A DNA stretch of 64,000 nt from the NCBI RefSeq assembly GCF_000007005.1, contig NC_002754.1; one strand, given 5' to 3'. This DNA comes from Saccharolobus solfataricus P2 (GTDB lineage Archaea > Thermoproteota > Thermoprotei_A > Sulfolobales > Sulfolobaceae). A model generated the notes under the pieces. That model saw only the letters and a list, made by a program, of their open reading frames with translations. It did no database searches and was not told the origin of the DNA. Positions within the stretch are counted from its first letter, which is position 1, and each line of letters begins with the position of its first letter. Positions 2,874 through 47,268 of the stretch are shown piece after piece. Made by a program: the position numbers and the translations under genes.

Positions 2874-3575
2874 CTAAAGGAAATCAAATAAAGAGGTAGT
2901 TTTCTTACTATCATTATCTAAGTTAGTTTTAGAATAATGCGTCCTTAAAATTTTATAAATATCTTCAGCTTTTTTCCTACTACCTAGTGCTTTTTCCAGT
3001 TCTGATATAGATGCATTGCAAATATTCTGTATAGTTCCAAACTTAAGTAGTAGCCTTTCGGCTAGGATAGAACCAACATTAGGAAAAGACTCTACAATGT
3101 AAAGTTGTATATCAGAAACACTTTCCAATTTAGCCTTATTATGTAAACTAATTCGATTACTCTTGTTTTCACCAAATTGGAATTTTTCAGCTATTTTTTT
3201 CAAAACTTCTGCCGTATCTTTTTTGTCCCTAGAATAAAACACTTTAACATCATAATCAATTGTAGCAGAAATTAACGCATTGTTAATTGCTCTCCACTTT
3301 TCAGTTATCTTCCTAATATCATTAATATCGCCCTCTACGAGTAATATTGGAAAACGATAAACCTCTGAAAGCCTGCTAATTTGGTCAAAAAACCTTTTGT
3401 CAAAAACTGAATTTACTAGATCATTTACTGATTTCCTCTCTACTGCAACATCATCAGTTATTACATAATCAGCTACAGTAAGTTGAGAAAATATTACTGT
3501 AATTCCTAACTCCTTTAATAATTCTGGTATGCCACTAGCCTTTTCCCTATCATCAGCATAAATTCTAATTACCAT
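2874..3575 (-). CDS. xpf: Crenarchaeal short XPF/Rad1 structure-specific endonuclease
   Basis: ERCC4 motif ADYV...VERKS..D, C-terminal HhH2 (FPNVGSILAERLL), PIP-like C-terminus TSLFDFL. Confidence 0.93.
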   Translation of the reverse strand: MVIRIYADDREKASGIPELLKELGITVIFSQLTVADYVITDDVAVERKSVNDLVNSVFDKRFFDQISRLSEVYRFPILLVEGDINDIRKITEKWRAINNALISATIDYDVKVFYSRDKKDTAEVLKKIAEKFQFGENKSNRISLHNKAKLESVSDIQLYIVESFPNVGSILAERLLLKFGTIQNICNASISELEKALGSRKKAEDIYKILRTHYSKTNLDNDSKKTTSLFDFL

Positions 3576-3596
3576 AACACTAATAAGTTACTTTGC

Positions 3597-17163: not shown

Positions 17164-17263
17164 GCGGGGGTGCCCGAGCCTGGTCAAAGGGGGCGGACTT
17201 AAGACCCCCAAGTAAGAGATCCGCTGGCGAAGGCCTGCACGGGTTCAAATCCCGTCCCCCGCA
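17164..17263 (+). tRNA. tRNA-Leu(UAA) with 15-nt intron at 37/38 (17204-17218)
   Basis: Acceptor stem GCGGGGG...CCCCCGC-A, long variable arm, BHB motif CUUA/UAAG with AGA bulges. Confidence 0.95.
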
Positions 17264-18754: not shown

Positions 18755-19034
18755 CTCACACTGTTGCTGTGCTATGTCTAATGAAGCACCTATTGCTCCA
18801 ATAATCCCGCCTATTGTACTTAAGATTGAACTTAGAGATATTCTGGCCGCAGTTCCTATAGCTATATGAAATTTAACTGGTCAATGTTTAAATATTTTCT
18901 CATAACAATAGACAGTTGATATATATACGCATTCATCCATGTAACCATTAAAATCATGTTTAAAAGAAAAATGTAATCCTTCTGCAGTTATAATGGTAAT
19001 AATTTATTACCAAAAACTTCTACTTTATTTAAGT

Positions 19035-19119
19035 GCGGGGGTGCCCGAGCTAGGTCGAAGGGGGTAGGCTCAGGCCCTACTGGTGAAGGCCTTCGCGGGT
19101 TCAAATCCCGCCCCCCGCA
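19035..19119 (+). tRNA. tRNA-Leu(CAG)
   Basis: Cloverleaf; anticodon arm GTAGG-CTCAGGC-CCTAC; long variable arm. Confidence 0.96.
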
Positions 19120-19194
19120 GTGATAAAATTTGCATACTTGGATAAACAGATAAAAATCCTAAGCTTTTTATGTTCTTTCGATAAAAAACTTCCG

Positions 19195-20930: not shown

Positions 20931-21038
20931 CGCCGGGGACGGGATTCGAACCCGTGTGCCTCAGAGAGGCAGTAGGTCCCTCGCAGTAACGCTGGAAAGG
21001 TCTCGAGCCTACCCCCTTGACCGCTCGGGCACCCCGGC
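20931..21038 (-). tRNA. tRNA-Ser(CGA) with 24-nt intron (20978-21001)
   Basis: GCCGGGG acceptor stem, long variable arm, BHB motif CUCG/CGAG. Confidence 0.95.
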
Positions 21039-26629: not shown

Positions 26630-26821
26630 ATGCTTTATTAACCTATTGAATGTTTTTCCACTAAAGACTATATTATTTTCCTTTCAATAATGATCAATAA
26701 TGATTAGATGCATAATTTCTTTTCTTCACACCTCTTAACTCTCTGTGAAAATTCAACAAGTCCGCAAAGCATAGCCCAAAGAAAACTTTTAAAGTGAAAT
26801 CGTTATTAATCAAATAACTAG

Positions 26822-27078
<257 letters not shown>

Positions 27079-27202: not shown

Positions 27203-27322
27203 TCAGATAGAATTAAGAAACACCTCGCTAACTAACGCCTCATGCCCGTCTTTGCGGATTAGATAATAAACACCAGGCCGATATTTCCCTCCGTCGTAGA
27301 TAAACCCGCCGTCGCTCGTCAT
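27203..27322 (-). CDS. Possible 39-aa mobile-element ORF or gene fragment (MTSDGGFIYDGGKYRPGVYYLIRKDGHEALVSEVFLNSI)
   Basis: Hand-translated ATG-TGA frame in a locally GC-richer patch; below track cutoff. Confidence 0.35.
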   Translation of the reverse strand: MTSDGGFIYDGGKYRPGVYYLIRKDGHEALVSEVFLNSI

Positions 27323-27430
27323 TTGAGCCCGCTATGTACCATATTGTACTTTAACATATTTAAATTTTGTGGTAATTTGTGGTACATTAAAGTTTTTATA
27401 TTGAAGTACAATAAAGTATATTGAGGTAAA

Positions 27431-27658
27431 ATGCCCAGGCCAGGTTATAAGTCGGTCTACTTCCCAGATGAGGAGCTATGGAAGAAAATAGTGGATGAGG
27501 CAGAAAAAAGGAAAGTAAGTGTATATGAGGTGTTAAAAGACGCTTTCAATTGCTATATAAGGGAAAAGGAAGGGAATAAGGTAAGTATGGAGGAAATAGT
27601 AAAAGAGCTCCAGGAATTGAAGAAGAGGGTTGAGGAACTGGAAAAGAAAGTTAAATAG
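27431..27658 (+). CDS. Ribbon-helix-helix (CopG-like) DNA-binding protein with C-terminal coiled coil
   Basis: YKSVYF strand followed by two helices and a heptad tail; typical of Sulfolobales plasmids and viruses. Confidence 0.75.
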   Translation: MPRPGYKSVYFPDEELWKKIVDEAEKRKVSVYEVLKDAFNCYIREKEGNKVSMEEIVKELQELKKRVEELEKKVK

Positions 27659-27665
27659 AATTTTT

Positions 27666-27693
27666 TATTGATAAACTGGGGAGTTAACTAATC
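27666..27693 (+). repeat. Conjugative-plasmid recombination motif / dif-like site
   Basis: TAAACTGGGGAGTTAA at 27672-27687, one mismatch from the recalled pNOB8-family motif TAAACTGGGGAGTTTA; 11-6-11 layout. Confidence 0.65.
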
Positions 27694-27784
27694 TTCTTAT
27701 TCAAATAATAATTCTATAGGGATACTAACTTAGTATAAATAAAAACAGAAAGATTTTCAAATCCCAAAAAATAAGAACTAAATT

Positions 27785-27856
27785 GGGGAGCGGGGAAATG
27801 ATGAGGGTTCCAGAGCTGAAGCGTGATGAATGGTTGACACGCTGACCCCGCTCCCC
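27785..27856 (+). ncRNA. 72-nt box C/D-like guide RNA with 11-bp terminal stem (copy A)
   Basis: GGGGAGCGGGG-AA-ATGATGA-GGGTTCCAGAG-CTGA-AGC-GTGATGA-ATGGTTGACACG-CTGA-CCCCGCTCCCC; TATA-like box 23 nt upstream. Confidence 0.88.
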
Positions 27857-27903
27857 TAATTTCCTTTGAGTTAGTGACAATAAAGTTTTCTCAATTCACT
27901 ATA

Positions 27904-28110
27904 TTATCTTCCTTTTCTATTTCTAGAAGAAGCCCTGCTTACTATGTCGTCCGGGACTTTCCTTATTTTACCCACAACATACCTGTATAGAGTACTCCTA
28001 CCTATACCTAACTTCTGTGCAACATAACTCAGCTTGTACTTTTCTACTACCTTTTTGAGTACCCGAATTTTTTGCTCATTATCGAGTCTATCTAAGTCAA
28101 TCTTTACCAT
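27904..28110 (-). pseudogene. Truncated pNOB8-type integrase (N-terminal HTH only)
   Basis: MVKIDLDRLDNEQKIRVL...LGIGRSTLYRY...KVPDDIV resembles the recalled pNOB8 Int N-terminus; directly downstream of tRNA-Glu; stops after 68 aa. Confidence 0.78.
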
Positions 28111-28223
28111 AATCTCATATACCAATATTAAATGGTGAGAGTGTTGCAAAAATATCCTTTGCTGTTGCAAATCTCTTATCTCTGTAGAGAACGTAATTTT
28201 CTTTCAAATTATCATAAAATTAG

Positions 28224-28313
28224 TGCCGCGGCCGGGATTTGAACCCGGGTCACGGGCTCGAGAGGCCCGCATTCTTTCGGTGCCTGCGCTTGACCGGGCT
28301 AAACCACCGCGGC
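28224..28313 (-). tRNA. tRNA-Glu(CUC) with ~15-nt non-canonical D-arm intron (28276-28290)
   Basis: GCCGCGG acceptor stem, loop CTCTCGA; BHB motif CGGU/ACCG with CAA and AAA bulges; removal restores a normal 75-nt tRNA. Confidence 0.93.
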
Positions 28314-45176: not shown

Positions 45177-45263
45177 GTTGTAAGTCTTATCACTATAAAT
45201 AAAACTAAAATTCTTCATTAGCTTTGAAGCAACGGACGTGAACCATTTCACACTTTAAGTGTA

Positions 45264-46081
<818 letters not shown>

Positions 46082-46126: not shown

Positions 46127-46198
46127 GGGGAAAGGGGTCAGCTCCCAAGCCGTTCATCCTGGCTCAGTTCTGGCGTGGCTCATCATTCCCCTTTCCCC
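46127..46198 (-). ncRNA. 72-nt box C/D-like guide RNA with 11-bp terminal stem (copy B)
   Basis: GGGGAAAGGGG-A-ATGATGA-GCCACGCCAGAA-CTGA-GCC-AGGATGA-ACGGCTTGGGAG-CTGA-CCCCTTTCCCC; TTTTTAAA box 23 nt upstream. Confidence 0.88.
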
Positions 46199-46287
46199 GT
46201 TTTCTAGTTTTGCAAAATAGGTTTAAAAACTTTTCTGTTTTTATTTTTGTCCTTTTAATATCTCATTAGGAATAATATTTTAAAAGG

Positions 46288-46677
46288 TTATTTAACTTCC
46301 TTCTTCTCTACAACTATTATTAAGAAACTCATAGGGGGTAATTTAGAAGAGACGTAACAAGACACTTCTAAAGGTTCCTTAGCTCTAATTACGCTCTCTT
46401 TTATGAATTTTAAATGAAGATCAGACGACACTAATACTAAATACTTAGTACTATCAGGAATAAAAAATCTAAAGAACTTTTCATAACTAGAAATTATTCT
46501 AGCGTTAATGAAATAAATAAAATTAATTTGCTCCCGATTTATAACCCTTAATAAATCCTCATCAACATAAGTTTCTAGTTCTTTAGGGCTTAACGATTTC
46601 ATATAGTATATATCATGTGTGAAGACATTTATTAAGTTTATTATAAATTCTTTAATGGTGTAGTTCCATTGCTGCAA
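46288..46677 (-). CDS. Hypothetical protein
   Basis: 129-aa ORF; true start may be MKSLSPK. Confidence 0.55.
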   Translation of the reverse strand: MQQWNYTIKEFIINLINVFTHDIYYMKSLSPKELETYVDEDLLRVINREQINFIYFINARIISSYEKFFRFFIPDSTKYLVLVSSDLHLKFIKESVIRAKEPLEVSCYVSSKLPPMSFLIIVVEKKEVK

Positions 46678-47137
46678 ATATCATTATAATTCCTAGTACT
46701 ATTGCCAATCCGTTAATTAATGAGCTATCATACGAGAAGTGGGCTAATGCTACCCTCTTCCACTTTCCGTTTCTCTTAACGTAAATCCCATTCTCAGTGA
46801 AGACGTCTAATAGCATATGTGATGGTCCAACTAAAATCCCATCAATTAACGCTGTCAAAATTTTTGTGTTTAACATACCGTATGCTAAACCTAACACTAT
46901 TATTACTGGCATTGAGGAAATTAAACCCCAAAAAACACTTCTTGGCAGGGTATGAGTTAGAGGAGTCCTAACCGGAATTTTCCCATACCTTGTACTTATC
47001 TCTTTATGCCCCAACCTATCGATAAGGGTATTTCCTAAGACACTTATAATAGCAGATATTATCAAAGAAAAACCGAAAAAAGAACTAGCCAAAGTCAACA
47101 ACCCAATAGAAAACACAAAATGAGTTTTTAACTTCAT
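46652..47137 (-). CDS. DUF1286-like membrane protein (putative metal-dependent hydrolase)
   Basis: MKLKTH, IDRLGH, RTPLTH, SHMLLDVFTENG; start taken at MKLKTHF. Confidence 0.75.
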   Translation of the reverse strand: MKLKTHFVFSIGLLTLASSFFGFSLIISAIISVLGNTLIDRLGHKEISTRYGKIPVRTPLTHTLPRSVFWGLISSMPVIIVLGLAYGMLNTKILTALIDGILVGPSHMLLDVFTENGIYVKRNGKWKRVALAHFSYDSSLINGLAIVLGIIMIFAAMELHH

Positions 47138-47268
47138 ACAAGTCTTTTTATTAAATAATATTAGCTTATAAATAGAGAGGTATTCGGTGCTGTTCAACCC
47201 TATGCTCATTACTAGTAATCCCGTGATGATGCTGCTGGCCCTGCTAACTGACTTCCTCATGCCCTTTA

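Follow-up and report, generated by a model that had tools for sequence, protein, structure and literature searches.

Two box C/D guide RNA cassettes in the Saccharolobus solfataricus P2 chromosome lie in remnants of conjugative plasmids and have homologues with other guides on free plasmids

The stretch of DNA analysed here, 64,000 nucleotides (nt) of the Saccharolobus solfataricus P2 chromosome (NC_002754.1; referred to as the window), contains two cassettes of 72 nt each, copy A (27785-27856, + strand) and copy B (46127-46198, - strand). Both have the build of archaeal box C/D small RNAs (sRNAs): box C and box D are closed by a terminal stem, an internal D'/C' pair encloses a short spacer and there are two guides of about 12 nt. 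Their parts are listed below, copy B being read from 46198 to 46127.

Copy A
27737-27784, +: promoter, consisting of the 15-mer AAATAAAAACAGAAA (27737-27751) and the B recognition element (BRE)/TATA-like GATTTTCAAA, with TATA at 27754-27761 and 23 nt from there to the stem
27785-27795, +: 5' stem arm GGGGAGCGGGG, followed by AA
27798-27804, +: box C, ATGATGA
27805-27815, +: D' guide GGGTTCCAGAG
27816-27819, +: box D', CTGA, followed by the spacer AGC
27823-27829, +: box C', GTGATGA
27830-27841, +: D guide ATGGTTGACACG
27842-27845, +: box D, CTGA
27846-27856, +: 3' stem arm CCCCGCTCCCC
27857-27862, +: TAATTT, directly 3' of the stem and common to copies A and B and the cassettes of plasmids pYN01 and pB12E5

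Copy B
46199-46246, -: promoter, consisting of AAATAAAAACAGAAA (46232-46246) and then TTTTTAAA, with 23 nt to the stem
46188-46198, -: 5' stem arm GGGGAAAGGGG, followed by A
46180-46186, -: box C, ATGATGA
46168-46179, -: D' guide GCCACGCCAGAA
46164-46167, -: box D', CTGA, followed by the spacer GCC
46154-46160, -: box C', AGGATGA
46142-46153, -: D guide ACGGCTTGGGAG
46138-46141, -: box D, CTGA
46127-46137, -: 3' stem arm CCCCTTTCCCC, followed by TAATTT

In both copies, the terminal stem is a perfect G/C helix of 11 base pairs (bp), and the D' and D guides measure 11 and 12 nt in copy A and 12 nt each in copy B. The scaffold pattern occurred twice in the window, compared with 0.00 occurrences expected from 100 shuffles, and a box-based scan of the 64 kb detected no further canonical C/D cassette. 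The predicted folds, which include the 11-bp terminal helix, have energies of -31.9 and -31.5 kcal/mol for copies A and B (z = -3.8 and -3.7, respectively). Exact occurrences of the 15-mer in the window were found only in front of the two cassettes; each time 33 nt follow up to the stem, and TTTTCAAA or TTTTTAAA ends 23 nt before the first G. The TAATTT motif may serve to end or trim the RNA; as an oligo-T terminator it is weak. An earlier interpretation of this DNA, made from the letters without database searches (the sequence-only reading), had described two 72-nt cassettes of the same design from the stem to TAATTT, and direct reading found them exactly as claimed. The homologous promoters with a TATA-like box 23 nt before the stem, which it had also proposed, were borne out by the 15-mer and the identical spacing.

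When the cassettes were compared with Rfam, copy A reached 41.5 bits with sR3 (RF01133; gathering score 41), and copy B reached 41.5 bits with snoPyro_CD at a threshold of 45 and thus stayed below it. In the sR3 alignment, the D' guide of copy A is gapped and the D guide matches at 6 of 12 positions. To judge from this alignment, the match is driven by the boxes and not by the guides, and copy A would not be counted as an sR3 RNA. Among close strains both cassettes are well preserved: copy A recurs without a single change in 10 contigs of S. solfataricus-type strains, and copy B carries 2 substitutions over 181 nt in CP160827, one of them inside the D' guide. The proteins of the window are encoded identically in S. 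solfataricus LT549890.1, ACUK01000205.1 (98/2) and CP160827.2.

Homologous cassettes were found on 12 of the 14 Sulfolobales plasmids examined, of which pNOB8, pSOG1, pTC and pMGB1 were available as a whole and the others as matching regions of 5-8 kb. The main locus lies between a DUF1286 gene (upstream) and plrA (downstream), behind the promoter AAAATAAAAACAGAAAnnTTTTTAAAT plus 23 nt, and is occupied in pNOB8, pB12E5, pSOG1, pSOG2, pYN01, pHVE14, pARN4, pARN3, pRT2 and pHGQ25. On pTC there are two tandem units elsewhere on the plasmid, the first of which is also present in pRT2; the pTC cassette is likewise preceded by a promoter of the copy A type. A second locus, between plrA and a copG-like gene, carries a unit in pKEF9 and in the related-strain contig L058. 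The variable parts of the plasmid cassettes are as follows.

pNOB8, pB12E5: 5' stem arm GGGGATGAGGGG; D' guide GCACGACACGAG; D guide GGACGCCGTTGCT
pSOG1, pSOG2: stem GGGGTTAGGGGG, imperfect, with a perfect core of 6 bp; D' guide GCACGACACGAG; D guide GGATGCCTGCCGT
pYN01: stem GGGGATGAGGGG, same as pNOB8; D' guide GTAGGGTCAGAA; D guide GGACACTCGGCAG
pHVE14: stem GGGGGCTGGG, imperfect; D' guide GACGGGCTATAG; D guide GACGGCTTGGAAG
pARN4: stem GGGGGGCGGCGG, imperfect; D' guide ATCCGGCTAGAG; D guide GGAGGCGTGGAAT
pARN3: stem GGG, 3 bp, long variant; a long segment as D' guide; D guide ATGCGTGGCCCG
pRT2, pHGQ25: stem GGGGGC, 9 bp with AAC/GTT; D' guide GGAGCGACACG; D guide ACCTGTTACGAG
pTC, second unit: stem AATGGGGGCC; D' guide ACTGGCCTAGAC; D guide TGGAATCTCAGG
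pKEF9, second locus: stem GGCGGGG; D' guide GGAGCGACGGG; D guide ACGAGTTACGAG
L058, second locus: stem GGCGGGG; D' guide GGGACGACGGG; D guide GCTTGTTACGAG

It can be seen that the plasmid copies have box C and box D, a terminal G/C clamp of 6-12 bp and guides of 11-13 nt (one long segment in pARN3). The stem arms vary and yet stay complementary (AGC/GCT, AAA/TTT, ATGA/TCAT, GGCGGGG/CCCCGCC), and the family shares a conserved downstream flank, TAATTTAnTCTTA...CTATTAAGCTTTTCTTCT. At gathering scores, Rfam did not recognise the plasmid copies. A mobile-element-borne family with a conserved scaffold, covarying stems and swapped guides, as postulated in the sequence-only reading, was thus confirmed by the plasmid comparison, and the reservation made there, that homologues might never occur on free elements, does not apply.

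Some plasmids carry further structures near the cassette. Just upstream of the main cassette, pRT2 (L060:2436-2490, +) and pTC (L220:19009-19071, +) have a different C/D-like unit with the D guide G(A/G)GACGACAAG and short or AT-rich stems, so that tandem pairs exist on some plasmids. Genes for TnpB (an RNA-guided endonuclease of the IS200/IS605 type) are found no more than 1-2 kb away from the cassette locus of pRT2 (L060) and pHGQ25 (L068) and are frequent on pMGB1 (L221) and pNOB8 (L061). On pMGB1, which is free of cassettes, three TnpB genes occupy the position expected for the DUF1286-cassette module.

Between pNOB8 and pYN01, 53 of 53 non-guide positions are identical, as against 10 of the 25 positions in the guides (Fisher p = 7e-10). 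Pairwise identities averaged over nine cassettes were 0.76 for the 60 nt upstream, 0.73 for the 40 nt downstream, 0.87 for the boxes and about 0.6 for the guides, the last value being near chance for gapped 12-mers. Not every guide is exchanged: GCACGACACGAG is invariant as D' guide in pNOB8, pB12E5, pSOG1 and pSOG2, the flanks of which are only about 80% identical. The assertion that all four window guides are unrelated is only roughly true, but the D guide of copy B differs by a single nucleotide from that of pHVE14. These two D guides (copy B, 46142-46153; pHVE14, L064, about 3571-3583) share a GGCTTGG core in the same register to box D with the D guide of L044, a contig of a metagenome-assembled genome (MAG), and TTCCAG is common to the D' guides of copy A and L044, shifted by 3 nt. 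Taken together, the alignments indicate that scaffold, promoter and flanks are kept across the plasmids while the guides are replaced.

The surroundings of the two chromosomal copies are listed next.

Locus A
26822-26898, +: transfer RNA (tRNA) gene tRNA-Val(TAC), in overlap with the next entry
26857-27078, -: SSV-type int(N) fragment (PF07935, E = 3.9e-35; 77% identity to the pSSVi integrase)
27305-27330, -: decayed third cassette of the 'locus 2' type of pKEF9 and L058, recognised by alignment with L058 and pKEF9
27431-27658, +: copG-like gene of 75 amino acids (aa), left neighbour of copy A; 91% aa identity to the pKEF9 homologue
27904-28211, -: truncated N-terminus of a pNOB8-type (non-partitioning) integrase with its upstream region, right neighbour of copy A
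28223-28313, -: tRNA-Ser(CGA), beyond the integrase fragment; its T-arm shares CCGGGATTTGAACCCGGGTC with the attP-like left end of L058

Locus B
about 45265-45301, -: tRNA 3'-fragment, precedes int(C)
45401-46081, +: SSV/pSSVi-type int(C) (PF16795, E = 2.8e-61), convergent with copy B
46288-46677, -: DUF4898 gene, upstream of copy B
46652-47260, -: DUF1286 gene, upstream of copy B; 58% identical to the pARN3 homologue

At locus A, both neighbours of the cassette are of plasmid type. The region of the copG-like gene matches pKEF9 and pB12E5 at the DNA level, and the DNA of the integrase fragment is 83% identical to that of the pSOG1, pSOG2 and pARN4 integrases; residues 21-81 of its open reading frame (ORF) of 88 codons correspond to residues 1-61 of the integrase of pSOG1 (70% identity, E = 3e-28). 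Contig L058 presents the plasmid order: attP-like tRNA fragment, gene of 126 aa, plrA, further C/D cassette, copG-like gene, copy A, integrase fragment. The plasmid remnant around copy A probably had the tRNA-Ser(CGA) gene as its attachment site, an assignment based on the shared T-arm sequence; convincing attachment-site direct repeats delimiting the plasmid remnants were not found. The decayed third cassette has no 3' half left, and mutation has turned its box C into ATGACGA and its D' into TTTA; its intact versions in pKEF9 and L058 are complementary to positions 1402-1412 and 1494-1504 of 16S ribosomal RNA (rRNA). Behind the copG-like gene (window 27670-27688) there is a motif, TAAACTGGGGAGTT (reverse AAACTCCCCAGTTTAC), which recurs, at times repeatedly, in the non-coding stretch between plrA and the cassette of plasmids (L059:3893-3910; L062:25900-25916) and may be a regulator-binding or origin-related repeat. 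Short-read assemblies (Logan contigs L053-L055; L052, L056, L057) break about 100 or about 450 nt upstream of the copG-like gene. The position of these breaks, within or close to the decayed cassette and the DNA of plasmid origin, suggests that the sequence is repeated elsewhere in those genomes.

At locus B, homology to conjugative plasmids begins exactly past the int(C) stop. The segment 46082-46280, which comprises the cassette and its promoter, is 72-84% identical to 10 conjugative plasmids, and according to the gene maps DUF1286 also precedes the cassette on the plasmids. The sequence-only reading was correct in that copy B faces the 3' end of int(C), the stop of which (46081) is 45 nt away. 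It erred in placing the cassettes inside SSV-type integrase remnants, since both lie in decayed remnants of conjugative plasmids of the pNOB8 type, directly beside fragments of SSV-type integrases. Its suggestion that copy A sits where an int(C) had been deleted was also wrong: copy A is flanked by the copG-like gene and the pNOB8-type integrase, and the int(N) at tRNA-Val is a remnant of an integrated element that adjoins locus A and is separate from it.

Several gene calls in the window deserve comment. Two Rfam tRNA genes (17164-17263, +, 100 nt; 20931-21038, -, 108 nt) were missed by ARAGORN, presumably owing to introns, and tRNA-Leu(CAG) at 19034-19120, called by ARAGORN, is absent from the Rfam table. 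Two ORFs (26694-26921 and 45205-45321, both -) are spurious, as they read through tRNA or tRNA-fragment sequence; the former is called as a gene in a public gene index (L050:9264-9491).

Four patterns were run against IMG/VR and no family member was detected: the A/B scaffold pattern gave 0 matches, the canonical double-box pattern 1 chance-looking match, and the promoter pattern and the pNOB8 D'/C' core chance matches only, in unrelated contigs. BLAST searches of fusellovirus and phage records with both loci returned no cassette match and, for locus A, no match at all. A scan of one genome per species with the A/B scaffold yielded 46 matches, most of them chance hits in GC-rich bacteria and none in records labelled Sulfolobales; a few archaeal MAG matches, L044 and L020, were useful. 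L044 is a homologue of locus A in which the flanks align and the stems (11/11) and boxes are identical, and the guides differ. In the Thermoprotei MAG contig L020 (1570-1633, -), a cassette of the family type combines D' TTGA and C' GTGATAG with a downstream flank like that of the plasmids; its upstream sequence is GC-rich and lacks the usual promoter, and its neighbours are chromosomal (a major facilitator superfamily transporter, a protein kinase). Possibly this copy was domesticated or orphaned.

Since homologous cassettes with their flanks are present on free plasmids and plasmid genes lie beside the chromosomal copies, we consider it probable that copies A and B are archaeal box C/D guide RNA genes and belong to an accessory module of conjugative plasmids of the pNOB8/pKEF9/pARN/pSOG/pTC type, which is self-contained, uses host proteins and survives in decayed remnants integrated at tRNA genes. 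On this model, the BRE/TATA promoter would direct transcription from, or from next to, the first G of the stem, as its geometry implies. The G/C terminal helix is predicted to close the kink-turn formed by boxes C and D, and the internal D'/C' pair should retain the GA cores needed for a K-loop, with the two guides of about 12 nt in canonical register. The RNA would then assemble with L7Ae, Nop5 and fibrillarin of the host, because the plasmid annotations read list none of these proteins, and by analogy with the RNA family each guide would select for 2'-O-methylation the target nucleotide that pairs with its fifth base, counted upstream from D or D' (the N+5 rule).

For the search of rRNA targets, guide positions 2-11 were scored against a null of shuffled guides, and sites are given in E. 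coli numbering. As proxies we used the S. acidocaldarius 16S rRNA (supplement of Dennis et al., 2015) and two metagenomic Sulfolobaceae-like operons, L156 and L137 (flanks of the latter, 36% GC). Three plasmid guides matched 16S rRNA better than their shuffled controls. The D' guide of pKEF9 is perfectly complementary (11/11) to CCCGUCGCUCC at 1402-1412, which makes U1406 the N+5 nucleotide (p = 0.007). The D guide of L058 pairs over 10 bp with UCGUAACAAG at 1495-1504 (N+5 = U1498; p = 0.007), and the D' guide of the pNOB8 group forms 10 pairs, including 1 G.U, with CUCGUGUUGUG at 1069-1079 (N+5 = U1073; p = 0.03). Because the first two of these sites are 1402-1412 and 1495-1504, the second-locus cassette looks like a double guide to both strands atop helix 44. 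The host sRNA Sac-sR129 addresses the same 16S stretch (1405-1414) with an offset of 2 nt (Dennis et al., 2015, PMC4644070). Judging from these complementarities, a minority of the plasmid guides is clearly aimed at host 16S rRNA. CCAAGCC, the complement of the GGCTTGG core, occurs in the 16S rRNA of several archaea and of some Sulfolobaceae-like operons, in a helix close to E. coli 270-280. A fit that extends to the flanking positions was seen only for the D guide of pHVE14 against the metagenomic Sulfolobaceae-like 16S rRNA L076 (10 bp), which makes this a candidate target.

A more far-reaching proposal is that a programmable plasmid module hijacks the L7Ae-Nop5-fibrillarin machinery of the host and methylates host RNAs, including the 16S decoding region (U1406, U1498), that guide turnover is adaptive and not drift (driven, for example, by host range, incompatibility, protection from plasmid toxins or counter-defence), and that integration gives chromosomes new guide RNAs. 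We regard this as a tentative idea that is rather unlikely to be right as a whole. The plasmids might also retain the cassette for tuning host ribosomes or other RNAs after transfer, for a guide-independent maintenance role of the ribonucleoprotein (RNP) or of an inverted repeat, or by selfish hitch-hiking, and the copies in the window may have undergone domestication or may simply not have had time to decay.

A number of observations weigh against guide RNAs that work as a plasmid module. There is no cassette in the whole sequence of pMGB1 or in the 7.2 kb examined of pAH1. In many plasmid copies, D' and C' are degenerate (TTGA; TATGATA, GATGAAA), with the UGA and GA cores kept. The near-random divergence of the guides also fits relaxed constraint on them, and the window copies sit in decaying remnants, one of which already contains a decayed cassette. 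The guide-complement search that the sequence-only reading had advised gave little for the window itself: the D' guide of copy A and both guides of copy B were no better than shuffled guides against the proxy rRNA operons, and the D guide of copy A gave a marginal match with 2 G.U pairs to GGUGUCAGCCGC in the 530 loop (N+5 = U518; p = 0.08). All guides of pYN01, pHVE14, pARN3, pARN4 and pTC were likewise no better than random against these rRNAs. In the proxies, which stand in for the rRNAs of S. solfataricus and S. islandicus, and in the tRNA comparison, which consisted of the 8 tRNAs of the window, the target range was narrow; no guide matched these tRNAs, and in the window and the fetched plasmid DNA guide complements were found only at the guides' own antisense. 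The rRNA alignments and sRNA lists of seven species (Dennis et al., 2015) contained nothing for the guides of A or B.

The alternative that survives best is a role independent of the guides, with the cassette acting as decoy or sponge for L7Ae, Nop5 and fibrillarin, as replication or copy-number RNA, or as an inverted repeat of the origin region, while the guides drift. It would explain guides that are near random between plasmids next to conserved boxes, stems and flanks, and the lack of a detectable rRNA or tRNA target for most of them, and the cassette does lie within a conserved non-coding stretch between plrA and DUF1286 that is rich in repeat motifs. Greve and colleagues, in 2004, reportedly assigned a putative origin of replication, marked by direct and inverted repeats, to a conserved section of the plasmids, which would suit this explanation. 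However, guide lengths are held at 11-13 nt in exact register with the boxes, and the stems covary without keeping their sequence, which points to constraint at the RNA and not at the DNA level. Moreover, three guides match 16S rRNA beyond the shuffled controls, and one of these guides is unchanged among four plasmids with flanks that differ by about 20%. Because all 53 non-guide positions of pNOB8 and pYN01 are identical, uniform drift cannot have confined the 15 differences to the 25 guide positions. On balance, we judge a guide-independent role to be unlikely.

The window copies could also be inert passengers that stem from old integrations and are by now neither expressed nor in use, whatever role the family may have on free plasmids. 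Both lie in remnants of about 1-2 kb with truncated integrases, and next to copy A another cassette has already fallen into decay. For three of the four window guides no target could be detected, and the match of the fourth is marginal. Nor was there any sign that A or B is conserved past close strains: the scan of one genome per species hit no record labelled Sulfolobales, and its sole homologue of A (L044) has other guides. On the other hand, boxes, 11-bp stems and promoters are perfect in both copies, and the near-identity among strains described above (A unchanged in the 10 contigs of several strains, B with its 2 substitutions between two strains) counts against this view as well. The intact promoter geometry suggests that the window copies can still be transcribed, and complete inertness appears quite improbable to us.

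Archaeal sRNA and tRNA genes often cluster in genomes. This clustering and the fact that copy A passes the gathering score of sR3 would agree with ordinary housekeeping C/D sRNA genes of the chromosome beside tRNA integration hot spots. The sR3 match rests on the boxes, however, with no alignment of the guides; plasmid DNA forms the flank of B and both flanks of A, homologues behind the same promoter reside on 12 free plasmids, and the guides of A and B are absent among the sRNAs of seven archaeal species, so that we consider housekeeping genes a highly improbable explanation. Cargo of SSV-type viruses, pRN plasmids or elements with an SSV-type integrase, the kind of carrier suggested by the sequence-only reading, can practically be dismissed: int(N) and int(C) fragments adjoin both loci, and the abutment of copy B on the int(C) stop means that a composite element with an SSV-type integrase and a DUF1286-sRNA module may have existed, but the 45 fusellovirus records match only the integrase of locus B and neither locus A nor either cassette, pSSVi matches the integrase only at both loci, and the IMG/VR scans yielded no member.

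The proposed plasmid-borne guide RNA genes can be compared with several known systems. Sulfolobus box C/D sRNAs, sR1 and sR3 among them, were reportedly described by Omer and coworkers in 2000. The cassettes resemble these sRNAs (RF01133, RF01152; PMC4644070) in their RUGAUGA and CUGA boxes in register, two guides of about 12 nt and a core of about 55 nt, and in that some guides are complementary to conserved 16S sites under the N+5 rule. Unlike the host sRNAs, they occupy a conserved position of conjugative plasmids, share a promoter of their own, have a G/C clamp of 6-12 bp, and carry guides that are replaced between close relatives and mostly lack an rRNA target. The clamp can be taken as a trait of the family because the listed S. 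acidocaldarius sRNAs are without long terminal stems (Dennis et al., 2015, PMC4644070). 'Mobile C/D box sRNAs' have been discussed for Nanoarchaeum equitans, without a vehicle (Randau, 2012, PMC3491384), and retroposons of small nucleolar RNAs (snoRNAs) for mammals (Weber, 2006, as cited in PMC3491384). Those cases share the idea of C/D guide genes that move and diversify, but by chromosomal rearrangement or retroposition, whereas the present cassettes ride on self-transmissible plasmids and enter chromosomes by integration. Epstein-Barr virus is said to encode a C/D box snoRNA, v-snoRNA1, that uses the core proteins of the host. The likeness is a C/D box RNA on a mobile genetic element that relies on host core proteins; the differences are a eukaryotic herpesvirus, a single intronic gene, no family of conserved scaffold and variable guides, and an unrelated origin. 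Spacer-repeat (CRISPR-like) arrays on Sulfolobus conjugative plasmids were reportedly described by Greve and colleagues in 2004. Guide arrays of the TIGR-Tas type occur in phages together with Nop-domain proteins, the domain being common with Nop5 (PMC12045711). Both share with the cassettes a mobile element with short programmable guides in a constant scaffold; the cassettes differ in being single C/D units with no dedicated effector nearby, and their expected chemistry is 2'-O-methylation by host proteins, in contrast to nucleic-acid cleavage.

Full-text searches of the literature, some of them with exact guide-plus-box strings, turned up no account of plasmid-borne C/D sRNAs; older plasmid and RNomics papers lay outside this search, and an earlier mention is possible. 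As far as could be established, the kind of RNA is known, and its carriage as a self-contained, guide-variable plasmid module has not been described.

The usual view takes C/D box guide RNAs to be housekeeping genes on the chromosomes of archaea and eukaryotes, and the fast turnover of archaeal guide sets between species is an open question in the field; according to a specialist review of 2021, mobile features of C/D sRNA genes are still to be discovered. A plasmid cassette that is left in a chromosome after integration would offer a concrete vehicle for the horizontal spread and birth of guide RNAs, and it raises the possibility that a mobile element reprogrammes the RNA modification of its host. 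If the more far-reaching proposal above should prove right, integration would supply the mobile feature of archaeal C/D sRNA genes that has been sought in the field.

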